Virus record (IMG/VR): IMGVR_UViG_3300028558_000016
Location: 248,001-312,000 of that record
Reading direction: 5' to 3' (one strand)
Length of the DNA: 64,000 nt
In this document: positions 243-64,000 of the stretch, in pieces
How positions within the stretch are numbered: position 1 is the stretch's first letter
Layout: every line of letters starts with the position of its first letter
Program-made: the position numbers and the translations under genes
The notes under the pieces: model-generated
The model's input: only the letters and a program-made list of their open reading frames with translations
The model's database searches: none
What the model was told of the DNA's origin: nothing

Positions 243-259
243 TTAGTAATTTTACATTG
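243..259 (+). promoter_or_regulatory. Putative early/host-RNAP promoter (-7-like element)
   Basis: ttagtaattttacattg; same motif at 52741, 55320, 59309 and 50244 (minus); resembles Bacteroidota TAnnTTTG. Confidence 0.55.
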
Positions 260-319: not shown

Positions 320-958
320 ATGAACAACAACAACGACACCAACGAAACAGGAACAGTAGCAACTTCAAACGAAACCGCTGCTTCAACCTCAACCGCAAAA
401 AAGCCAGCTAAGAAAGCTGCAAAAAAACCGCATGTAACAAAACCTGCCGCTAAAAAACCTGCAGCAAAGAAACCTGCTAAAAAAACAGCAAGCAAACCTG
501 CTGCTAAAAAACCGGCAAAAAAAGCTGCTAAGCCAGCTAAAAAAGTAGCTAAAAAACCTGCTGCTAAAAAACCATCAAAAAAATCAGGAAAACGTACAGC
601 CGACAATTTCGATCGTAACTTCGGTCGCATCCGTTTCAACGGTGAGTCATTCTCAAAAGGCCGTGCAGTTCATGCAGTAATCGCTGCTTTTGCTGAAAAG
701 AAAAAACCGACCGCTTCAGCGTTACAAGCTGCATTCCCGGCTGAGTTATTGAAAAACTACGGTATCGTACGCGAAGCTGCAAAAGCACGTCAATACAATG
801 TAAATGGAAAAACCCGTTTCTTTGTTGACAGCGCGGACCTTATCAAAACAAAAGATGGAAAATCTTTTGCAGTGTGTAATCAATTCTCTACTGAGAACAT
901 TAAACCATTCATCAAGCATGCGAAATCTTTAGGTTTCACCATGACTGCTGGAAAATAA
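320..958 (+). CDS. Histone H1-like Lys/Ala/Pro-rich protein fused to a globular putative DNA-binding domain
   Basis: About 65 aa of KKPAAK/KKPAKK repeats, then a folded domain (FNGESFSKGRAVHAVI...AVCNQFSTENIKPFI). Confidence 0.75.
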   Translation: MNNNNDTNETGTVATSNETAASTSTAKKPAKKAAKKPHVTKPAAKKPAAKKPAKKTASKPAAKKPAKKAAKPAKKVAKKPAAKKPSKKSGKRTADNFDRNFGRIRFNGESFSKGRAVHAVIAAFAEKKKPTASALQAAFPAELLKNYGIVREAAKARQYNVNGKTRFFVDSADLIKTKDGKSFAVCNQFSTENIKPFIKHAKSLGFTMTAGK

Positions 959-7729: not shown

Positions 7730-8944
7730 ATGAGCTTTCAATATACACAAATAGATCCAGAAACAGCTACCCCGGAAGAAATTAAGGCCGAGATAGACAG
7801 GATGAAACAACTTTCCAATGAGTGGAAAAACGAAGAACAAGCAGTAAAAATCTTAATTAATTCCATGTATGGTGCTCTTGGAAATAAGTGGCTCGTATGT
7901 TTCAACCCAGACGTTGCTGAGACCGTAACACATCAAGGACAAAACTTCTTCATGCTTGCGGAAAAATCTATAAATCATTATTTCCAAAACATGTGGGTTA
8001 AGGATACAGAGCTTCATGCAAAGCTTGGAATTGTTGGAGAAGTAAAACCCGTAAAAAAACCTGTTGTAATTGCTGGAGACACTGATAGCTGTTATGTTTG
8101 TTGGGACGAAGTAGTGGAGTCTTTCGATTGGGAAGCATCCAATGTTGAAGGTGGACCTCATGGACTCATATTGAAAATAAATGAATTCCGATTTGCTAAC
8201 TTCTTAAACACCGTGTTTGACAGATATGCAGCAAGAGAGAAAACAAAGAACTATCAAGATTTTGAACTCGAGAATATTTCTGAATCTGCTATATGGCTTG
8301 CAAAGAAGAAGTACTTATTGAATGTTGTATGGCAAGATGGAATTGACATCAATACTCTTACTCAGATCACATTCAAGGGAGTTGAATTAGCACAATCATC
8401 AACTCCTGAATTTGCGAGAGAGAAATTAAAAGATCTCGTTAAGTTCGTATTCACAAATAAGAAAGGGTTGAAGCTTAACGACATCATCGGTCTATTAAAA
8501 AAATATAAAGAAGAATTCAAGATAGCTGATCCTCAGAAAGTTTCCATGGGTAGAGGAATAACTGATTATAGCAAATACATTTTGAATGACTCAACTAAAT
8601 TTGAGGTGGCAAGCAAATGTCCAATTCACGTTAGGGCTGCAGGATATTACAATTATTTGCTTAACCAAAATCCAAAATTAAAAAGCAAGTACGAAGTAAT
8701 AAAGGCTGGTGACAAGATTAAATTCTTCCACGCTAAGACAAAGGGATGGTCCGAGAATTTAGCGAGCAACGAAGAGGATGTATTCGCATTTCTTCCAGGA
8801 TCTTTTCCTGTGGAGTTTGCTCCTCCAATTGATTATGATAATCAATTCACTAAAACTATCATTGACCCAATAAATAGGATCACCTCAGCAATGGGACTTC
8901 CAGATATTGGCCCGAATTTATTTATTGCGCATGCGCTTTTCTAA
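7730..8944 (+). CDS. polB: Family B DNA polymerase, C-terminal subunit of a split enzyme (fingers, palm and thumb)
   Basis: KILINSMYG (motif B) near the N-terminus, AGDTDS (motif C), AKKKY, KGVE; no exonuclease domain or motif A. Confidence 0.9.
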   Translation: MSFQYTQIDPETATPEEIKAEIDRMKQLSNEWKNEEQAVKILINSMYGALGNKWLVCFNPDVAETVTHQGQNFFMLAEKSINHYFQNMWVKDTELHAKLGIVGEVKPVKKPVVIAGDTDSCYVCWDEVVESFDWEASNVEGGPHGLILKINEFRFANFLNTVFDRYAAREKTKNYQDFELENISESAIWLAKKKYLLNVVWQDGIDINTLTQITFKGVELAQSSTPEFAREKLKDLVKFVFTNKKGLKLNDIIGLLKKYKEEFKIADPQKVSMGRGITDYSKYILNDSTKFEVASKCPIHVRAAGYYNYLLNQNPKLKSKYEVIKAGDKIKFFHAKTKGWSENLASNEEDVFAFLPGSFPVEFAPPIDYDNQFTKTIIDPINRITSAMGLPDIGPNLFIAHALF

Positions 8945-9239
8945 AAAATTAATTGATTGGATAACGAAGACCGTTTTAGAAACGAGAGGTGCGTCATTTC
9001 GTTACAACATCAATTACGCGAACAGCTTGATGAAACGAGTTGACCGATTGATTGAGGAAGAATATGCCCTAAACCTTCCAGGAGGAACAACATACAGTTG
9101 GCACATCAAGCATTCGTTGATGAGTGTTAGGTTTGCCATAATGAATGGCACTCTTAGCACTGACCTAATTGGAGACAGATTGGACCAGCTCTCAGACAGA
9201 ATAGATGAAGCAACAGAATTATTTAAAAGAGGAAGATAA
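8931..9239 (+). CDS. Hypothetical helical protein
   Basis: ORF overlapping the polB end; start moved to ATG 8931. Confidence 0.55.
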   Translation: MRFSKKLIDWITKTVLETRGASFRYNINYANSLMKRVDRLIEEEYALNLPGGTTYSWHIKHSLMSVRFAIMNGTLSTDLIGDRLDQLSDRIDEATELFKRGR

Positions 9240-9514
9240 TGGAATTAGTTGATTTTGTTCAAAATAAAATATTACAGAGAAGAAGGGCATTTGATAGGAA
9301 CCACGTCATTTTTAAATATGCAGATTACCTTCTTGAAAGTATAGCTAAACTTAAATTTCCATTGAAGTACGGAAGGATAGCACGTTTGATATATGATACT
9401 AACCATGATTTCTATATTGGAAAAATTTCAGAAGATGAAGCAAGAGAACATCTTGAATATTTTGCAAGTAAAATAGACACATTTCACGAACATGAAAATC
9501 GTAAAAACATTTAA
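9239..9514 (+). CDS. Hypothetical protein
   Basis: TAATG-coupled ORF. Confidence 0.55.
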   Translation: MELVDFVQNKILQRRRAFDRNHVIFKYADYLLESIAKLKFPLKYGRIARLIYDTNHDFYIGKISEDEAREHLEYFASKIDTFHEHENRKNI

Positions 9515-9908
9515 AGATGGAACAGTCCTGGTCGAATCCGACCAAGGAAGCGCCGTCATGGACCTTGACGAATATGAACGTCTAAGGCTCAAAAATTTTG
9601 ATCTCGGAGAAGAGATCTTAAAAAGATTGAAGGACACTTTTTCTCATTGCTCATTCTCAATACATGAGATGAAATCGAGAGAACACATCTACATGGATGA
9701 CTCAATAGAACTCACAAACTTGTCAATAGGGTCTCTTGAATTCTGGATACGTGACGAGAAAATGACATACGATGATATTATGAAGTATATGGACCAGAAA
9801 ATCATGCCTCCTATATTAATGGAAGTTAATAAAGTTGAATGCAAAAGGTGTCAGGATTTCATGTATTTTTTCAATCATTATGCCCGAAACAAAGGCCCTA
9901 AAGACTAA
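9492..9908 (+). CDS. Hypothetical protein
   Basis: Overlapping co-oriented ORF. Confidence 0.55.
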   Translation: MKIVKTFKDGTVLVESDQGSAVMDLDEYERLRLKNFDLGEEILKRLKDTFSHCSFSIHEMKSREHIYMDDSIELTNLSIGSLEFWIRDEKMTYDDIMKYMDQKIMPPILMEVNKVECKRCQDFMYFFNHYARNKGPKD

Positions 9909-50243: not shown

Positions 50244-50255
50244 CAAATATACTAA
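50244..50255 (-). promoter_or_regulatory. Bacteroidota-type -7 promoter element
   Basis: ttagtatatttg on the minus strand (TAnnTTTG). Confidence 0.6.
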
Positions 50256-52686: not shown

Positions 52687-52711
52687 TAACTTATTGAATA
52701 TCAATACTTTA
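52687..52711. promoter_or_regulatory. 25-bp palindromic operator-like site, copy 2
   Basis: taact-ta-ttga-ata-tcaa-ta-cttta in the divergent intergenic region. Confidence 0.55.
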
Positions 52712-52740: not shown

Positions 52741-52757
52741 TTAGTATATTTACATTG
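52741..52757 (+). promoter_or_regulatory. Putative early promoter element
   Basis: ttagtatatttacattg. Confidence 0.55.
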
Positions 52758-52775
52758 ATAACAACCAACCAAAAG

Positions 52776-53309
52776 ATGAATAGAAAACACAAAAAAGGCG
52801 ATGTCTTAGTTTTATCTCCTGACGTCCAAAAAATAAGGAATGAAATCCTCGGCAAATGCGAAGATTTAAGTCCATTGGTAAACAAGATAGTTGAATTTGA
52901 AATCTACGATTCAATTCACATCAAGAAGCAAAATGAAATTCACATGTGCCGGGTGATCGGACAAAAATTGCCTCCACGAAAAGGCGAAACACCTTTGCCA
53001 ATAGACATCAGAGAATTTTTAATTCCTGAGACTGCACTAATCACCGCGAAAGATCATTTAATACACCTCACGAAAACAACAGAGCTCCAAGGCATTTACA
53101 AACATCTTATAAAGAATGCAAACAAGGATTTTGATTACTTGTTGTTTTCGCTGGAAATTTCTCAGCAAGCGCAAGGTGGCGCAAGATCTGGAATTGAAAA
53201 TTGCGTAGGAAAAGAAATAGTAGAATTGTCCATGAGCATTTTTCCTAATGCAAGGCTTGGCGACATCATACCAGAAGAATATTACCAAAGATTTAATCAA
53301 CCAAAATAA
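52776..53309 (+). CDS. Hypothetical protein
   Basis: Start moved to ATG 52776. Confidence 0.6.
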   Translation: MNRKHKKGDVLVLSPDVQKIRNEILGKCEDLSPLVNKIVEFEIYDSIHIKKQNEIHMCRVIGQKLPPRKGETPLPIDIREFLIPETALITAKDHLIHLTKTTELQGIYKHLIKNANKDFDYLLFSLEISQQAQGGARSGIENCVGKEIVELSMSIFPNARLGDIIPEEYYQRFNQPK

Positions 53310-53310
53310 A

Positions 53311-53487
53311 ATGGCAAAAGCAACAACAGTCGAAAATCAAAACGGAGGATTAGATCTTCTCGTTGAGAAAGATGCTGGTAATGAAATAAGAATTTCTACT
53401 GGCGACGAAAAAAACAGTTTAAAGTTCTGGCAACACATGAAAGAATTGTGTGAAGGAGCTATTCATGAATTAAAAGACAAAGAATAA
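53311..53487 (+). CDS. Small hypothetical protein
   Basis: Start moved to ATG 53311. Confidence 0.5.
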   Translation: MAKATTVENQNGGLDLLVEKDAGNEIRISTGDEKNSLKFWQHMKELCEGAIHELKDKE

Positions 53488-53488
53488 T

Positions 53489-53851
53489 ATGACAATATAT
53501 CATGGTACGGACAAAGAATCCGCAGAAAAAATACAACAGGATAAAATCCTGAAAGGCTCAGGAAGTTTTGGGCCTGGAATATGTCTCACACTCGAAAGAG
53601 CATTAAACTATTCAGCAGTCAAATGTGGAAAGCATGGTCCACAAGCAAAAAACATTGGACGAATAGTAATGATCGAAAATATTCCATCTCAAATATTGAA
53701 CACCGCTTCAAAGGATGCTCCTGAAGGTTTCACTCTTAACGATGAGTTTGGAAAACCATCAAGAGGATTGCATTTACAAAAGGTGAGAATCCTATCCATC
53801 AAAGAAGCACAATGCATGATGTCAATGGAACATGAATTTAATAGCAATTAA
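53489..53851 (+). CDS. Minimal ADP-ribosyltransferase-like protein
   Basis: IYHGT...I...G.FGPGICL...A.NYS. Confidence 0.55.
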   Translation: MTIYHGTDKESAEKIQQDKILKGSGSFGPGICLTLERALNYSAVKCGKHGPQAKNIGRIVMIENIPSQILNTASKDAPEGFTLNDEFGKPSRGLHLQKVRILSIKEAQCMMSMEHEFNSN

Positions 53852-53853
53852 AA

Positions 53854-54291
53854 ATGCAAAAATTTGAACGAATAGAAATTTCTGAAGAAAGAGCCAAACA
53901 GCTTGGAACAGATGAGGTGTGGGTAAATGAAACTCATCAGGTAATTGTTTACAGAGATCCTAAAGAAGCTCCTGAGCTTCCACAAAATTCAAATCCAAAA
54001 GATTGGCCAGCGATGATTTGGCTATCAATAAAACGTGTTGACAGGGAAGCGATGCATGATTGGAGAGAACTACAGGAAATAAAGAACATGATCGTCGGCC
54101 CAGAAAACGAAGCAGTAGAAGTTTATCCTGCTGAATCAAGATTGGTTGACACTTCAAACCAATATCACCTGTGGGTTTTTGCTGACAAGGAAGTAAGATT
54201 TCCATTTGGATTTACTTCACGAGGTGTAGCTGATCCTGAACTTGCCGAAAAGATGGGTGCAAAACAAAGACCGTTTAATAAACATAACTAA
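53854..54291 (+). CDS. Conserved phage protein (DUF7694-like)
   Basis: WLSIKR.DR...HDWRELQEIKN...E.EAVEVYPAESRLVD..NQYHLW. Confidence 0.7.
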   Translation: MQKFERIEISEERAKQLGTDEVWVNETHQVIVYRDPKEAPELPQNSNPKDWPAMIWLSIKRVDREAMHDWRELQEIKNMIVGPENEAVEVYPAESRLVDTSNQYHLWVFADKEVRFPFGFTSRGVADPELAEKMGAKQRPFNKHN

Positions 54292-54539
54292 TGAGAGTAA
54301 AAACAAAATATGGAAATGGCACCTTGATTGGTGTTTCCTCCAACGGTGGAATAAATTTAAGTTTTAAAGTATTATTGGACAATACTTTTCCTTCTGATTT
54401 GCCTGAAGAAGAAAAAGAATTAAATGAAATCAAGAATGCTGAAAGCAGGATATACAATTGTTTATCTGTTGATGTATTAACTGATGATGGACAAGTAATA
54501 GAACTTGGAAAAGATATAATAATTAAATTTGTAAAATGA
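54291..54539 (+). CDS. Hypothetical protein
   Basis: TAATG-coupled. Confidence 0.55.
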   Translation: MRVKTKYGNGTLIGVSSNGGINLSFKVLLDNTFPSDLPEEEKELNEIKNAESRIYNCLSVDVLTDDGQVIELGKDIIIKFVK

Positions 54540-54868
54540 TGAAAGAGTCAGAAAAATTAAAACAACAATCAGCGGAAGAAGATAACGATCTTATTGCGAT
54601 GGGTATTGGAAAGAAAATCATCCGCGAAGAACGAATAGAAAAGTTCGAGGAGAAATGGTTGAAGAAATTTCAATTGAAGTTTGGGGATAACATTAATTGG
54701 GTTCCTACAATGTATTGTTATAGAATTAATGATAACGGAAAGATAATTGATTTCTATCCAAAGGCCAACAAGCTATTCATCAAAGAAAAGAATAATTGGG
54801 TTAAACCAGGATTAAAATTTTTAGTTAAAATGTATTTCACCGCTGACGAAATCAACGCTGCAATATAA
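54536..54868 (+). CDS. Hypothetical protein
   Basis: ATGA-coupled; IDFYPKANK motif. Confidence 0.55.
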   Translation: MMKESEKLKQQSAEEDNDLIAMGIGKKIIREERIEKFEEKWLKKFQLKFGDNINWVPTMYCYRINDNGKIIDFYPKANKLFIKEKNNWVKPGLKFLVKMYFTADEINAAI

Positions 54869-54927
54869 AGAATTCGCTATTTTTTTGTATTTTTACTTAG
54901 TATGCTTACTGATAAAAATCCAAAATT

Positions 54928-55248
54928 ATGGCAACACTACTGAAAGAAAAAACGAGGCACGTATTCATAAGTGCAATGAATTTTGTTAGAGTTAGATTAT
55001 TTGAAGGAACAGAATTAAATACGCCTGAGAAAAAAATCAGGGATGAAAAGGAAAAGGAAAAAGCTTTAGTTCATTATGAAAAGATCATGAAGAACATTGG
55101 TACATGTCAAAATAAATTGCAAATTGATACAGCTCATGTAATGATAGATCAATTTTATTCAAGATATGGAAGACTGTGCCATGATAAGTATTTGAACCTA
55201 CAAGAGAAGATGAATGAACGCAAAGACCAATTATGCATGTACTTTTAA
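54928..55248 (+). CDS. Hypothetical helical protein
   Basis: Isolated ORF with an upstream AT-rich gap. Confidence 0.55.
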   Translation: MATLLKEKTRHVFISAMNFVRVRLFEGTELNTPEKKIRDEKEKEKALVHYEKIMKNIGTCQNKLQIDTAHVMIDQFYSRYGRLCHDKYLNLQEKMNERKDQLCMYF

Positions 55249-55250
55249 TG

Positions 55251-55275
55251 TAACTGCTTGATTATCAATAAGTTA
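55251..55275. promoter_or_regulatory. 25-bp palindromic operator-like site, copy 3
   Basis: taact-gc-ttga-tta-tcaa-ta-agtta upstream of PARP; promoter-like ttagtaatttta at 55320. Confidence 0.6.
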
Positions 55276-55352
55276 TATTTCCATTATTTAATGGAAATAT
55301 TTTTATTTATGGCTAATTATTAGTAATTTTATAGTAAATAAATCAACCAAAT

Positions 55353-56801
55353 ATGGCAACAAAATCATCAACAATGTCCGGCGAGGACATTAAAAAAACA
55401 GCGATCGATAAAGGATTAAAGGTCGCAATACTCGTATGTGTGTCAGATGACAACAATAACAAGTATTTCAATATGTACGAACAAGGAGATGGAACTTACA
55501 TGGTAATCCGCGGAAGAGTGGACGTTACCGAAATAATCGAAGGTCCATACCCAATGTCAAAATGGGATGTTCATTACAAGGACAAAACAAAAGCAAACAA
55601 AAAACCAAAACCTTACACTGATCAAACTCATTTGTTCTCTGAACAAAAGAAAAGCGATGGTGCAGGAAAGAAAAAAGAAAAATCATCGAACTTCCATTCA
55701 AAGAGAACTGCAATGGTAATTGATTTCGTGAAACAACTTCAAAAATTCGCAAATCAATCGGTAGAAGAAAACTACACGGTATCAGCCGCAAACGTTACTA
55801 AGAAGCAAGTTGATTTCGCTCAACAAACTTTAAATCAAATTAGCGACATGGTTAAGAAAGGCGCAGAGGTTGGTCCAATCAATGACAAACTAATGGAGCT
55901 TTATCAAATCATTCCTCGTCGTATGAAACATGTGAATAACCACCTCATCATTACAGATGAAATGGAAAAAACACTTGGTAAAGTTGAGAAGACCGACAAA
56001 GAAAAAATGAAAGAGGCGAAAGCTAAAACATATTCAATGAAGATTAAATCTGATGCCGAGTTACAAAAAGCGCATGACATGATTGCCGGTGAGCAAGATA
56101 CTCTTGACGTTATGGCAGGTCAGGTTGCTGTTGAAGAACAGGAAAAGAAAGATCACGTTGAAACCCCAGGTGCTAAAAAAGAATACGATTTATTGCACGC
56201 AATGAAACTTGATATGGAAGATTGCGATAAGTATGAAATTGCAATGCTTAAGAATATGCTTGATCAAAACGCTAAAGCCGGCCACGAAAAGAATTCAAAC
56301 CTTTTCAAACGTGCATATCGCGTTAAGAACGATAGCACTGAAGTTGCTTACAACAATTTCATGGGTAAAGTTAAAAACAAGAAGAAGGAATTATTGTGGC
56401 ATGGAAGTCGCAATGAAAACTGGTGGAGCATTTTCCAACAAGGTTTAGTTCTTCGTCCTACCAATGCAGTAATCACCGGTAAGATGTTTGGTTACGGATT
56501 ATATTTCGCTGACAAGGCGCAAAAATCCATAAACTACTCTTCTTATTCTGGAGCATCACGCTCTTACACAGGGGGTTCATCAAGGAATGCAATTCTTGCG
56601 GTATATGAAGTTCACCAAGGAGATCAATTGGTAATTAAACGTCATGAGCACTCACACTCACAATTGACTGATAAACAAATGGAAAAACACGGTAAAGATT
56701 CTGTGTTCGCTCAAGGCGGTTATGACCTTGTGAATAACGAATACATTGTGTACAAGCAACAACAATGTACTATAAAATATCTTGTTGAAATTGGGAACTA
56801 A
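55353..56801 (+). CDS. Poly(ADP-ribose) polymerase-like protein (WGR-like, regulatory and catalytic domains)
   Basis: NNKYFNM...IRGRV; LMELYQIIPR; LLWHGSR, GKMFGYGLYFADKAQKSINY, NEYIVY (H-Y-E triad). Confidence 0.9.
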   Translation: MATKSSTMSGEDIKKTAIDKGLKVAILVCVSDDNNNKYFNMYEQGDGTYMVIRGRVDVTEIIEGPYPMSKWDVHYKDKTKANKKPKPYTDQTHLFSEQKKSDGAGKKKEKSSNFHSKRTAMVIDFVKQLQKFANQSVEENYTVSAANVTKKQVDFAQQTLNQISDMVKKGAEVGPINDKLMELYQIIPRRMKHVNNHLIITDEMEKTLGKVEKTDKEKMKEAKAKTYSMKIKSDAELQKAHDMIAGEQDTLDVMAGQVAVEEQEKKDHVETPGAKKEYDLLHAMKLDMEDCDKYEIAMLKNMLDQNAKAGHEKNSNLFKRAYRVKNDSTEVAYNNFMGKVKNKKKELLWHGSRNENWWSIFQQGLVLRPTNAVITGKMFGYGLYFADKAQKSINYSSYSGASRSYTGGSSRNAILAVYEVHQGDQLVIKRHEHSHSQLTDKQMEKHGKDSVFAQGGYDLVNNEYIVYKQQQCTIKYLVEIGN

Positions 56802-57217
56802 TGGAAGAAAACAAAAACGATATAGAAGAAATCGACGGTGTCCAAGAAGAGAGGGGTGAATTCCCTCCCTTCTTTGGCTTGTTTAGAATGACAAGATTTG
56901 AACGTGTACTTCATGCTTCCATCATTGGATTAATTGGAGCAGCATTCATCGCATACACTCTGTGGAGCAAAATCATTCCAGGACAAAACCCAACTAAGGA
57001 AATGCTACAGATGAATGATTGGTATGTTATACCATGTTTCGTATTATCTGTTTTGCTTCTGTTGTCTGGATTTCCAGTTGTAATGAAAGACAGAAGTTTT
57101 GGAAACATGATGCTTCAACAATTGCTTAGATGCTTCATGGCGATAATATGGATGGTCTTATATTTTGAAGCAAGTCAAATATTATTCATAATTTTTTACA
57201 GACACTTACCAGCATGA
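56801..57217 (+). CDS. Three-TM membrane protein
   Basis: Three hydrophobic helices; TAATG-coupled to PARP. Confidence 0.6.
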   Translation: MEENKNDIEEIDGVQEERGEFPPFFGLFRMTRFERVLHASIIGLIGAAFIAYTLWSKIIPGQNPTKEMLQMNDWYVIPCFVLSVLLLLSGFPVVMKDRSFGNMMLQQLLRCFMAIIWMVLYFEASQILFIIFYRHLPA

Positions 57218-57714
57218 GTAAAGAAAAACATAATCATAAGGAAGGCTTTGAATGTGAAGCTTGCAAAATTGGAATGAAAGCAATGAAAGAAAAAGAAGCT
57301 GGATTCCTAAAAAATCCAGGTTGGTTCGCTCATTATGTTCCAGATCCTACATATCCAAATGGAATGAATGTGCACACCCACGGTCTTGAAGAAAATTTCA
57401 AGCATCTTGATTTGCAAATATGTCTTGCTATGGATCAACGTATATGCCATCAAATTTTAAACAATGCCATTGGAGAAATAAAGGCAGGAAAGAAATTTGA
57501 GGCCGGAGAAAAATACGATGATGTCATTGAAGCAAGTCCAGCATACAAAGACCTTAAACTAAAGGTTCTTTTCCTTGAAGCCGAGGAAGGTGGAAGAAAA
57601 GTTCTTCGCATGATTTTTCCTGAAAAAGATGGAAGTTTTATGGGGCAAATGTCATCCAAACAAATGGAAGGTTGTAAGGTTCCAGAGGATTTAATCTTAT
57701 ATTATACGTTATGA
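57214..57714 (+). CDS. DUF4262-like protein
   Basis: GWFAHYV...NVHTHGL...HLDLQI. Confidence 0.55.
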   Translation: MSKEKHNHKEGFECEACKIGMKAMKEKEAGFLKNPGWFAHYVPDPTYPNGMNVHTHGLEENFKHLDLQICLAMDQRICHQILNNAIGEIKAGKKFEAGEKYDDVIEASPAYKDLKLKVLFLEAEEGGRKVLRMIFPEKDGSFMGQMSSKQMEGCKVPEDLILYYTL

Positions 57715-57944
57715 ATTCACACCTATTGATGACAGAAACTTCCAACATAGATTGGAAAGAAAACAGAGTTATTGACAATGATAAGCTTGAAAAAACGGTT
57801 ATTCCATGGGAAGATAACATTGAGGTAACCAATGGTCTTGATGGAGAAAAGAAGACAATTAAGATGAAAACTGTGTCTTTATATGAACATATTATGTTAA
57901 AAGATGGAAAAAAATACAAAATATTGCACATGTTATCAAAATAA
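57711..57944 (+). CDS. Hypothetical protein
   Basis: ATGA-coupled. Confidence 0.5.
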   Translation: MNSHLLMTETSNIDWKENRVIDNDKLEKTVIPWEDNIEVTNGLDGEKKTIKMKTVSLYEHIMLKDGKKYKILHMLSK

Positions 57945-59327: not shown

Positions 59328-60485
59328 ATGCAGATACCTAAAGACATAGCAGAAATTCAACAAAAATTCATCGCCGCTGGAAAAGAAATTTTCCTCGTTG
59401 GTGGATGTGTTCGTGATTTCAAGCTTGGTCTTGAGCCCAAAGATTTGGACATGGCAACCAATGCCTTTCCAGAAGAAATTGAAACCATCCTCAAAGGAGT
59501 TGAGATGGACCTTACAGGCAAAAGTTTTGGAGTCATGCGGGTTCGCAGTGAGTTCGATCCAAACGGATACGAAATTGCCACATACAGAGAAGATGAGAGT
59601 GCTGGAAGAAAACCGACCGTAAAGATCGGATCAACCATGGAAAACGATGCGTGGAGAAGAGACTTCACGATCAACGCTCTTTACTATGATATTTCCAACA
59701 AGACTATAATTGATCACACTGGCGGGCTCAATGATTTAGAAAACAAAATCATTCGTGCTTGTGGCGATCCTGCGAAAAGAATTAACGATGATGCTTTGAG
59801 AATGCTTAGGGCAGTTCGTTTCAAAAATACTATTGGTGGAACTATTGATGTTGACTTGCATAATGCAATGTTGGCCAATCCTGTTTTACAAGGTCCAGAC
59901 AAAGATGGAAATATAGTACCAATATCACAGGAGAGAATAGCTGAGGAATTCCTTAAAGGTCTTTCCAAAAGCTACAACATGGATCTCGTTGACCAATATG
60001 TGAAAGATTTAATGACATACCAATTTCTTGGACAAGTGTTCAGAGGACTTCACGTAAATGATAATTTTACATGCAACTCAAGAAAGCCTGAGATAATGAT
60101 TGCGGATCTTTTACGTTTTAATACGAATCACAAGGATTTATTTAATAAGCTTGTTTATGATTGCAAATTCAGTATTGATATTGCCGAAGGAGTTATTTTT
60201 CTTTTGAGCCTTGAAGATATTGATGAGGACAAAGTGTACAAGCTAAGAAAAAGAATGGACAGCAAAACCAAATTAAATAAGGATGATCTTATTATTTATT
60301 CAGGTTTAATGGTAGAGAATGGAATGATTGGAAGAGTTGCTTATGTACATGCATTCACTAAATATTCCATAACAACAAGCGGAGATGAATTAAAAGAAAA
60401 GGAAGGATTTGTTGATGGAGCAGAACTTGGAGCAGAGATAGCAAAAAGAGAGAAAAACAATTTTTTAAAAATATTTACACAATGA
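59328..60485 (+). CDS. cca: Class II CCA-adding tRNA nucleotidyltransferase / poly(A) polymerase family
   Basis: VGGCVRD...KDLDMAT; EIATYR; DAWRRDFTINAL; DDALRMLRAVRF; ERI..E. Confidence 0.85.
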   Translation: MQIPKDIAEIQQKFIAAGKEIFLVGGCVRDFKLGLEPKDLDMATNAFPEEIETILKGVEMDLTGKSFGVMRVRSEFDPNGYEIATYREDESAGRKPTVKIGSTMENDAWRRDFTINALYYDISNKTIIDHTGGLNDLENKIIRACGDPAKRINDDALRMLRAVRFKNTIGGTIDVDLHNAMLANPVLQGPDKDGNIVPISQERIAEEFLKGLSKSYNMDLVDQYVKDLMTYQFLGQVFRGLHVNDNFTCNSRKPEIMIADLLRFNTNHKDLFNKLVYDCKFSIDIAEGVIFLLSLEDIDEDKVYKLRKRMDSKTKLNKDDLIIYSGLMVENGMIGRVAYVHAFTKYSITTSGDELKEKEGFVDGAELGAEIAKREKNNFLKIFTQ

Positions 60486-63157: not shown

Positions 63158-64000
63158 ATGTATAACATAAAATACCCGGTCGCATTCCACCCAGTGGATA
63201 TGGCCATAACAAGAATACACGAAGGAAGAATACAAGTTCTCCTTGCGCAAAAAGTAAAAGACACAGAAGGTGGAGCTAACATTGTTAGATTCCCTGGAGG
63301 TTTCCTTGATGTGTGTGACTCGTGTGCTGAAGAAGCAGCATTGAGAGAAGCAATGGAAGAAACAGGAATGAGATTTGGAAACTCTGCTATGGCAGATTAT
63401 TTCATCGGATACTTTGCTAAGAAGAAACCATTTACCGATAAGTTGAACAAACTTATAGAATCAAACGGTGATGCAAAGGAAATAACTGAAACCATCAACC
63501 AATTGCATGCAATCAAAATATCCGATGATGCTTTAGCATGGTTGAGAACAAGAACAACTTACATTGGTTCAACTAAGATTGATGATGCAAGATATGCTGA
63601 CACAGATCACAAAGTAATCACAAGCTTTTATGAGCTACATCCAAATCCAAAATTCGATAAGGATGGTGAAGGTCCATTTGATGACATCGCAAGAACAAAA
63701 TGGTTTTTCCTTTCAGACATTAAAGAAGAAATCATGCACAAGTCGCATGTTCCATTGTTCAACATGTTATTTGAAAAATACAAAGCAGAGAGACTTGCAG
63801 ACAACGTGTTTAACGCTGCTGAAGAGGTATTCAAATCAACAGAGGAAATGTTCAACACCTTCAAAAAAGAAACTGATGAGATTTTTGATGGAATAAAAAA
63901 GAAAATGCCTGAATACGAAAAGAAAGTGGATGAAGCAATGCAAGGCATGGGAAAGAAAATGGATAAGTTCTTTAGCGGTTTAGAAGATATTTTAAAATCT
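63158..64000 (+). CDS. Nudix hydrolase (ADP-ribose pyrophosphatase-like), running off the window end; not in the ORF track
   Basis: RFPGGFLDVCDSCAEEAALREAMEETG Nudix box; later DDARY and DDIARTKW; frame open to 64000. Confidence 0.85.
   Translation, partial: MYNIKYPVAFHPVDMAITRIHEGRIQVLLAQKVKDTEGGANIVRFPGGFLDVCDSCAEEAALREAMEETGMRFGNSAMADYFIGYFAKKKPFTDKLNKLIESNGDAKEITETINQLHAIKISDDALAWLRTRTTYIGSTKIDDARYADTDHKVITSFYELHPNPKFDKDGEGPFDDIARTKWFFLSDIKEEIMHKSHVPLFNMLFEKYKAERLADNVFNAAEEVFKSTEEMFNTFKKETDEIFDGIKKKMPEYEKKVDEAMQGMGKKMDKFFSGLEDILKS

Follow-up and report, generated by a model that had tools for sequence, protein, structure and literature searches.

The closest described relatives of the system presented here are the human poly(ADP-ribose) polymerases PARP1 and PARP2, in which a WGR domain, a helical domain and an ADP-ribosyltransferase (ART) catalytic domain succeed each other. 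In a published survey of bacterial PARPs, the Cytophagales type belongs to Clade 1.1, whose members have a WGR and a catalytic domain, a helical domain that is mostly missed by Pfam, and mostly Y-G-R as the WGR motif (Garcia-Saura et al. 2018, PMC5966428). So far, only two bacterial PARPs have been assayed, those of Herpetosiphon aurantiacus and Clostridioides difficile CD160. Both make poly(ADP-ribose) (PAR) in vitro, and the Herpetosiphon enzyme needs DNA for activity (PMC8120803). PARP genes in phages have been noted in surveys as well (PMC4245714, PMC7824862, PMC9503650). Here we consider such a gene in a stretch of 64,000 nucleotides, hereafter called the window, which represents bases 248001-312000 of the 482,156-bp virus record IMGVR_UViG_3300028558_000016, rated complete by CheckV. 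Its product of 482 amino acids (aa) is very probably a NAD-dependent ADP-ribosyltransferase with the architecture of PARP1-3.

The frame upstream of the PARP start codon is open for only five codons. The Pfam PARP catalytic domain (PF00644) is matched by residues 294-480 (E 4.6e-26; 92 bits with a cut-off of 26.7) over model positions 2-197 of 199, a match that can be considered far above chance level. The whole protein is assigned to phrog_23333 in PHROGs, and the solved structures to which its sequence is closest are those of PARP1 and PARP2 from human and chicken (E about 1e-17). His350, Tyr384 and Glu463 (codons at 56400, 56502 and 56739), predicted originally to form a full H-Y-E triad, indeed do so. 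When 45 homologues are aligned, these three residues prove invariant, and the same holds for G351, S352, R353, M378, K391, S392, Y395 and the pair G54-R55 of the WGR motif. The triad and the residues of the nicotinamide pocket align with the PARP1/2 motifs HGS, YFAD, KS.NY and NEYIVY, and the Ser/Gly-rich loop that follows Y395 (residues 396-412) is longer than in these enzymes.

The regions preceding the catalytic domain are those expected of a PARP of this type (Table 1). A family profile built from the 45-sequence alignment is collinear with the PARP1 WGR-helical-ART fragments 4OPX and 4DQY (positions 23-421, E 7e-30). An AlphaFold2 model of the protein, with a mean predicted local distance difference test (pLDDT) of 86 and a predicted template modelling score of 0.83, has a four-stranded sheet and a helix at residues 24-79 (pLDDT about 90), a linker disordered at 99-111, a helical domain at 120-283 and then the ART domain. 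In Foldseek, the full chain aligns to DNA-bound WGR-CAT chains of PARP1 and PARP2 over about 520 columns (E about 1e-19). Residues 110-482 of the model superpose on PARP1 662-1007 with a VIA-align Z of 25-26 and a root-mean-square deviation of 3.5-3.8 A over about 300 residues; therefore, the helical domain is complete and, as modelled, appears whole and collinear with that of human PARP1/2. The original prediction of a multi-domain PARP is thereby borne out, including its WGR-like N-terminus with RGRV (residues 53-56, nt 55509-55520), which homologue Pfam matches, profile and fold all support. As for the helical domain, the LYQIIP motif (residues 183-188, nt 55899-55916) and the insertion stand, while the designation "partial" does not. 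The insertion of about 40 aa forms an extra helical hairpin and is missing even from a relative that is 78% identical. Three hot-spots in the WGR domain have been tied to DNA-dependent activity in bacterial PARPs (PMC5966428); their counterparts in the phage protein are NNNKYF, RGR and K..PY. The module of WGR and helical domain is kept over its whole length and is under purifying selection.

The phage protein shares domain order and fold from end to end with human PARP1 and PARP2 (for example 4DQY chain C and 6X0L chain P), and it keeps the triad, the nicotinamide-site residues and the Y..IP motif of the helical domain. Identity amounts to only about 20-26%, and the phage protein is devoid of zinc fingers, a BRCT domain and a basic N-terminal tail; RGR takes the place of WGR and Asn that of the acceptor Tyr, besides the helical insert and the longer 396-412 loop. 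The Herpetosiphon and C. difficile enzymes belong to the same three-domain family, but to clades 2.2 and 2.3; their PARP_reg domain is recognised by Pfam, and they are accompanied by a PARG, which was not found in the phage. The Clade 1.1 proteins have the same architecture of WGR and PARP_cat, with a Y/W-G-R motif, and the clade of the phage protein corresponds to this Clade 1.1 (PMC5966428), although the phage proteins cluster apart from the bacterial ones.

This family is by no means a small one. More than 3,400 relatives were obtained in a database search, the best 120 of which cover about 95-100% of the query; a scan with one genome per prokaryotic species yielded 138 confirmed relatives, and in IMG/VR the gene was located on at least 224 viral contigs, which in many cases measure 100-425 kb. 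The best 80 of the 138 prokaryotic relatives are almost all from Bacteroidota (Saprospiraceae, Spirosomataceae, Microscillaceae and other Cytophagales), and the nearest cellular ones, in the three named families, are 36-44% identical over the full length. The PARP region is also present in rhizosphere metagenomes, DNA metagenomes of this kind being all that a run search listed. Homologous PARPs are annotated in Cellulophaga phage phi4:1, Xanthomonas phages XacN1 and Xoo-sp13, Klebsiella phages and LR756500, with 28-35% identity and mostly partial coverage; the sole full-length match among deposited phage genomes is the last of these, an uncultured 462-kb phage (35.5% identity over 95% of the length). 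A search of the deposited phage genomes at the DNA level gave no near-identical DNA to the locus. The terms "eukaryote-like" and "sporadic" in the original prediction were therefore overstated, and the PARP can be regarded as an intact member of a known, widespread clade of phages and Bacteroidota rather than as a rare eukaryote-like oddity. One further record deserves mention: a contig labelled Pacearchaeota archaeon (L053, JBBACR010000001.1) and the viral contig IMGVR_UViG_3300035208_004923 (L105) are each 425,361 bp long and do not differ in their PARP and partner matches. The archaeal label seems to stem from the binning of a huge phage genome as a metagenome-assembled genome of an archaeon.

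The phylogeny that had been proposed as a check was made with FastTree on 199 bacterial, viral and metagenomic sequences. The window protein groups with metagenomic relatives of 64-80% identity, and the bacterial proteins are essentially united in one group, separate from the viral ones; two changes are needed, one of which is a mis-binned phage contig. Capture of the gene is thus not recent, and it is extremely improbable that the PARP is a newly acquired passenger without function. The existence of cellular relatives at about 40% identity would fit such a passenger, but the frame is intact, all catalytic residues are invariant, and the phage relatives combine their 64-80% identity with conserved synteny.

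A second element of the system is a winged-helix partner. Iterative searches of the open reading frames (ORFs) at the PARP loci revealed a domain family of about 65-70 residues, located at the N-terminus of the partner protein, in 59 of the 80 Bacteroidota loci; another seven loci are not long enough for a decision. In other words, of 73 informative Bacteroidota loci, 59 have a winged-helix partner gene after PARP, as has this phage, which constitutes a strong association described here for the first time. The partner is encoded on the same strand in 58 of the 59 loci and starts 3-745 bp (median 85) after the PARP stop codon. Furthermore, the family is found beside or near PARP in 14 viral loci, and in the 51%-identical relatives the partner lies directly upstream of PARP.

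Most bacterial partners measure 85-120 aa, while some, of about 315 aa, themselves contain a WGR domain (Pfam E 1e-6); the short forms often end in a conserved F/Y-S-x-N C-terminus. The free-standing winged helix adjoining Clade 1.1 genes contrasts with the phage partner, which is fused to an acyl carrier protein (ACP)-like segment and a C-terminal domain and lies 1.2 kb from PARP. The N-domain is modelled as three helices and two strands, a winged helix (pLDDT 95-98), with generic DNA-binding winged helices as its only fold matches, at weak E-values, and no Pfam, PHROG or atlas family provided a name for it. The additional conserved C-terminal domain is common to the phage versions, and the ACP-like middle occurs in the version of this phage. 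This middle segment matches PHROG 5934, acyl carrier protein, but has D-H-L (segment about 85-160, where the AlphaFold2 model is poor) at the site of the usual D-S-L, the serine of which we take to be the phosphopantetheine attachment site of acyl carrier proteins. With His in place of this Ser, the segment is probably not a carrier protein. Hidden partners were sought among the small ORFs beside PARP in the T4-like viral clade, with hhalign probabilities below 1%. The winged-helix protein may be regarded as a candidate DNA-targeting partner or acceptor of the PARP.

In bacteria, the PARP-partner operon is in a number of cases directly preceded by genes for a divergent WYL-WCX regulator (17 loci) and for a protein with a pPIWI_RE_Z-like domain (16 loci), for example at 8254-9603 on the minus strand of locus L062 and at 9035-9760 of locus L090. 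These neighbours hint at a damage-response or defence-island setting.

In the phage, PARP is at the head of a block of genes with links to NAD and ADP-ribose. It is followed on the same strand by a transmembrane-looking ORF of 138 aa, a DUF4262 protein, the 273-aa partner and an enzyme with a PolyA_pol head domain, then by a 230-aa protein without assignment, the NMNAT-like protein of 463 aa and a Nudix protein; beyond the window come NAMPT, a NYN nuclease, a second Nudix protein and NADAR. The NMNAT-like, Nudix and NAMPT genes are 4-13 kb downstream of PARP, and the gene order is conserved in relatives with PARPs that are 71% and 51% identical. That PARP heads a conserved block of CCA-adding enzyme, NMNAT-like protein, Nudix, NAMPT, NYN, Nudix and NADAR in this phage clade is also new. 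NAMPT (genome 312301-314094) matches NAMPT_N and NAPRTase above their cut-offs and reaches 399.3 bits with NF006629, for which the cut-off is 405; its open frame of 597 aa extends about 130 aa beyond the 465-position model, suggesting insertions. The NMNAT-like protein passes the general cytidylyltransferase model only, and NadD equivalogs are matched weakly, far under their cut-offs. In certain aspects the block is reminiscent of the NAD salvage of other phages (NadV/NAMPT and NadM/NMNAT-Nudix in Vibrio phage KVP40), with the difference that it is syntenic here with PARP, the CCA-adding enzyme, NYN and NADAR, and that its NMNAT-like protein is divergent.

Elsewhere in the genome there are genes for a Macro domain protein, an ADP-ribosylglycohydrolase (ARH) and a second NADAR; a NAD-dependent ligase was not recognised in the phage genome. 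Judged from these assignments, the genome would encode a writer, several candidate erasers, ADP-ribose disposal and a two-step route from nicotinamide to NAD. With genes for putative NAD resynthesis directly downstream, the opposite of depletion, it is very unlikely that the PARP is a NAD-consuming weapon for superinfection exclusion or abortive infection, draining NAD upon encountering foreign or broken DNA. NAD depletion is a common conflict strategy (PMC7824862) and the neighbours of the bacterial operon could be in line with it, but the genome looks like that of a large phage of lytic type, and the phage clade has conserved its PARP. Among the small genes at 52755-55248 and 56801-57944, DUF7694 and DUF4262 are the only family matches. 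A 120-aa ORF that starts with MTIYHGT (53489..53851) has no family match; short H-G-containing proteins are sometimes minimal NAD-binding folds.

In other phages, the PARP gene has a different environment. In a T4-like viral group of more than 40 loci, it is found among genes for an ATP-dependent DNA ligase, Rnl1, Rnl2, RlaP and an AAA_33 kinase/GIY-YIG protein (PNK-like). Such ligases, RlaP and kinase represent a nucleic-acid repair setting, which fits a break-related role. Within this group, viral loci L120-L175 have a Gp23 capsid fragment nearby and a conserved repair island. The suggestion made originally, that the enzyme protects phage DNA ends or disables host defences, finds no direct support; the context points to nucleic-acid repair and to turnover of NAD and ADP-ribose.

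It could also be imagined that nucleic-acid termini are the main substrates. ADP-ribose would then be attached as a cap to phosphorylated ends of DNA or RNA, so that breaks of the phage or of tRNA are marked or protected until they are repaired. PARP1-3 can ADP-ribosylate DNA ends in vitro, the PARP of the T4-like group resides among ligases, RlaP and PNK-like genes, and a CCA-adding enzyme is a neighbour of PARP in this phage, in its relatives and in four Microscillaceae genomes. This support is contextual: among 80 bacterial and 80 viral loci, tblastn places the CCA-adding enzyme with PARP in only four each, and nucleic-acid modification has been shown for no phage or bacterial PARP. Capping as the main function is thus quite unlikely. 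As a general feature of PARP loci, a link to the CCA-adding enzyme was judged weak on the same counts. A blastp single-linkage cluster joining 32 viral loci to the CCA-type enzyme of the window was discarded as well, since its representative is an RlaP protein and the cluster therefore mixes families. The four Microscillaceae genomes (L018/L038, marine bacterium AO1-C; L035; L044; L048) have a 480-aa CCA-adding/PolyA_pol-HD enzyme after PARP and are without the partner.

The original prediction had placed PARP under an early-type promoter, with a 25-bp palindrome and a box upstream. Both elements are present (Table 1), and together they constitute a genome-wide regulon signal of 12 sites, which has not been described before. 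The 482-kb genome contains 12 palindrome sites, with 0-2 in shuffled sequences, and 11 of them have a TTAGTA[AT][AT]TTTA box 29-50 nt to one side. Boxes of the type TTAGTA[AT][AT]TTT[AG] number 25 in the genome (0-9 in shuffles), 24 of which are followed by an ORF start 4-69 nt on, and all six exact genome copies of the 12-mer box of PARP adjoin a palindrome. The commonest upstream motif of the phage is TTAGTATATTTG, with 12 copies that are typically located 20-30 nt 5' of a start codon; examples on the minus strand are at window positions 50255 (genome 298255) and 25294 (genome 273294). This motif fits TAnnTTTG, which we take to be the -7 consensus of Bacteroidota. The PARP box is a variant of it, the palindrome-linked boxes ending in A and not in G. 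The module is therefore real and recurrent, as predicted, while early timing is unreadable from sequence and the box itself is a variant of a general -7 element.

The Shine-Dalgarno core is present in 6% of genes, compared with 12% in background sequence. This low use, the TTAGTATATTTG motif and the cellular relatives of the PARP speak for a host among the Bacteroidota. A promoter model of the E. coli type was found inapplicable, as sigma-70 consensus sites near the gene are no commoner than in shuffles. 8-mers of the AATATATA type are also enriched upstream of genes. The upstream motifs and the low Shine-Dalgarno use suggest that there is more than one promoter class. The inverted repeat between palindrome and box is possibly a weak terminator of the upstream unit or a part of the promoter. 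The palindrome lies 29-50 nt upstream of the -7-type box, a distance at which activator sites are usually located and repressor operators less so, which suggests that the palindrome may serve as an activator site.

The relatives L015, L016 and L100 have likewise conserved the palindrome where the operon that contains PARP begins. The phage described here has this operon-head copy at 52687 and another one directly before PARP. Behind other copies of the module, the first genes encode several Lys/Ala/Pro-rich proteins and a UvrD-type helicase. The former are histone-H1-like, low-complexity proteins (window 320..958; genome 433562-434569, 337669-338283 and 330533-331180) without a match in Pfam; they may be phage nucleoid proteins and conceivable acceptors of ADP-ribose.

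Table 1. Location of the PARP gene, its domains, its regulatory elements and neighbouring genes in the window
Feature	Position	Strand	Basis or remark
PARP gene, 482 aa	55353..56801	+	ORF call, Pfam, PHROGs, homologue search
WGR domain, aa 20-95, RGR instead of WGR	55410..55637	+	homologue Pfam matches, profile, model, Foldseek
Lys/Ser-rich disordered linker, aa 96-113	55638..55691	+	pLDDT <50 at residues 99-111; length variable in alignment
Helical (regulatory-type) domain, aa 114-285	55692..56207	+	VIA-align, homologue PARP_reg matches
Clade-specific insert, aa 196-240	55938-56072	+	alignment; shared by nearest relatives only
ART catalytic domain, aa 286-482, with H350, Y384, E463	56208..56798	+	Pfam, alignments, superposition
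25-bp palindrome TAACTGCTTGATTATCAATAAGTTA (TAACTnnTTGATTATCAAnnAGTTA), putative regulator-binding site	55251..55275	.	
12+12 perfect inverted repeat (ATATTTCCATTA/TAATGGAAATAT), then T-rich run	55275..55300	+	fold z -2.3
Box TTAGTAATTTTA (ttagtaatttta), putative -7-type promoter element	55320..55331	+	21 nt 5' of ATG
Second module copy	palindrome 52687-52711, box 52741-52752	+	heads unit of small genes upstream of PARP
Third module copy	palindrome 168-192, box 243-254	+	ahead of Lys/Ala/Pro-rich protein gene 320..958
PARP-associated partner, 273 aa	58009..58830	+	winged helix aa 1-75, ACP-like middle, conserved C-terminal domain
PolyA_pol head-domain nucleotidyltransferase (CCA-adding type)	59328..60485	+	Pfam E 1.1e-32; syntenic in L015, L016, L100
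NMNAT-like cytidylyltransferase-fold protein, 463 aa	61110..62501	+	Pfam CTP_transf_like E 1.3e-10
Nudix protein, 281 aa, ends 3 nt past window	63158..64000	+	profile searches

On balance, we lean towards a joint explanation in which these elements, that is, an enzyme of the WGR-helical-ART type activated by breaks, a NAD cycle supplied by the phage, a partner and a regulon, belong to one system. The helical domain would inhibit the enzyme as long as no nucleic-acid break is bound by the WGR domain. Once activated in the infected cell, the enzyme would modify itself, and also DNA-bound proteins or nucleic-acid ends in its vicinity, with one ADP-ribose unit or with chains of them; the winged-helix protein is a candidate DNA-targeting partner or acceptor. 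NAMPT and the NMNAT-like enzyme would rebuild NAD from the nicotinamide released by the reaction, while the Nudix, NADAR, Macro and ARH proteins would remove or dispose of ADP-ribose. Transcription would start from a variant of the Bacteroidota-type -7 promoter, under a palindromic regulator site common to about 11 transcription units. Break-dependent activation, proposed by analogy with the architecture and with the Herpetosiphon enzyme, seems to us an evenly balanced matter.

Several observations weigh against this explanation. The phage sequence itself reaches neither Pfam WGR (no match at E<=1) nor PARP_reg, for which reason the domain assignment made use of relatives; 23 of the 45 aligned homologues match the former and 7 the latter. 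Arg occupies position 53, the first of the WGR motif, in the phage protein and in those closest to it; the other homologues have Trp or Tyr, the latter being common at this position in bacterial PARPs (PMC5966428). A complex prediction for PARP and the partner N-domain scored 0.00, which is evidence neither way. As to removal of ADP-ribose, the PARG family PF10021 is unmatched in the phage genome, its control being positive in Deinococcus; PF05028 is unmatched too, but its control also matches nowhere, which makes this result uninformative. Of the 80 other viral loci, only L100, from a relative, has NAD salvage within 10 kb of PARP, and none of the bacterial loci has, so that a general link was rejected and the link is specific to this phage clade; moreover, the salvage genes may equally have an independent function in countering host NADases. 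In the literature, no experimental study of a phage PARP or of this Bacteroidota clade was found.

Formation of polymers requires a separate judgement. The H-Y-E triad is necessary but not sufficient for it, since PARP3 and PARP4 are H-Y-E mono-transferases, and a structure entry for PARP4 is indeed titled 'mono-ADP-ribosyltransferase'. To read PAR synthesis from the H-Y-E triad, as in the original prediction, is therefore overstated. Asn461, in the motif L-V-N-N-E-Y (PARP1 L-L-Y-N-E-Y), is invariant in the family and occupies what we presume to be the position of PARP1 Tyr986, the acceptor site two residues before the catalytic Glu988. With the acceptor-site Tyr replaced in this way, chain elongation is doubtful, which is yet another point against the joint explanation. 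Asn461 would lower the claim of a polymerase without excluding it, and the chances that the phage PARP makes polymers seem to be even at best.

These same features would suit a mono-ADP-ribosyltransferase, constitutive or activated by a partner, that rewires host RNA polymerase, translation factors and nucleoid proteins in the manner of T4 Alt, ModA and ModB, with breaks being irrelevant. Besides the mono-transferases among the H-Y-E enzymes and the replaced acceptor Tyr, the loss of the WGR Trp and the several Lys/Ala/Pro-rich, DNA-binding-like proteins encoded in the same regulon are in its favour, and modification of host proteins has been proposed for phage PARPs in reviews (PMC7824862). 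Nevertheless, it appears unlikely: the WGR and helical module, for which the sole known role in characterised enzymes is break sensing and autoinhibition, is conserved, and the PARP lies away from head and packaging genes here and in repair contexts in other phages.

Within the explanation favoured here, a break-activated enzyme with its own NAD cycle, a more far-reaching but improbable view is that PARP and its winged-helix neighbour form a two-component ADP-ribosylation module of Bacteroidota and huge phages, which in the phage, together with the NAD cycle and a shared regulon, would amount to a chromatin-style break response. The winged-helix protein would then be a DNA-targeting subunit or the main acceptor, as histones or HPF1 are for eukaryotic PARPs. 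The module would be wired into a self-contained cycle from NAD to ADP-ribose and back to NAD, and its regulon would be shared with the nucleoid-like Lys/Ala/Pro-rich proteins and the UvrD-type helicase.

As a test case the locus is compact and complete: the enzyme is intact, a candidate partner is conserved with it, erasers and NAD resynthesis are predicted to be encoded as well, and the regulatory signal is defined. It is the pairing with the partner, the conserved NAD/ADP-ribose block and the regulon that give it experimental worth, and the PARP-partner operon is also present in cultured strains of Spirosoma, Fibrella, Larkinella and Fibrisoma, in which genetics is feasible. If the enzyme is activated by breaks, the sensing mechanism of PARP1-3 would operate outside eukaryotes as well, and ADP-ribosylation of the DNA-repair type would join the repertoire of phages beside that of the T4 Alt/Mod type.

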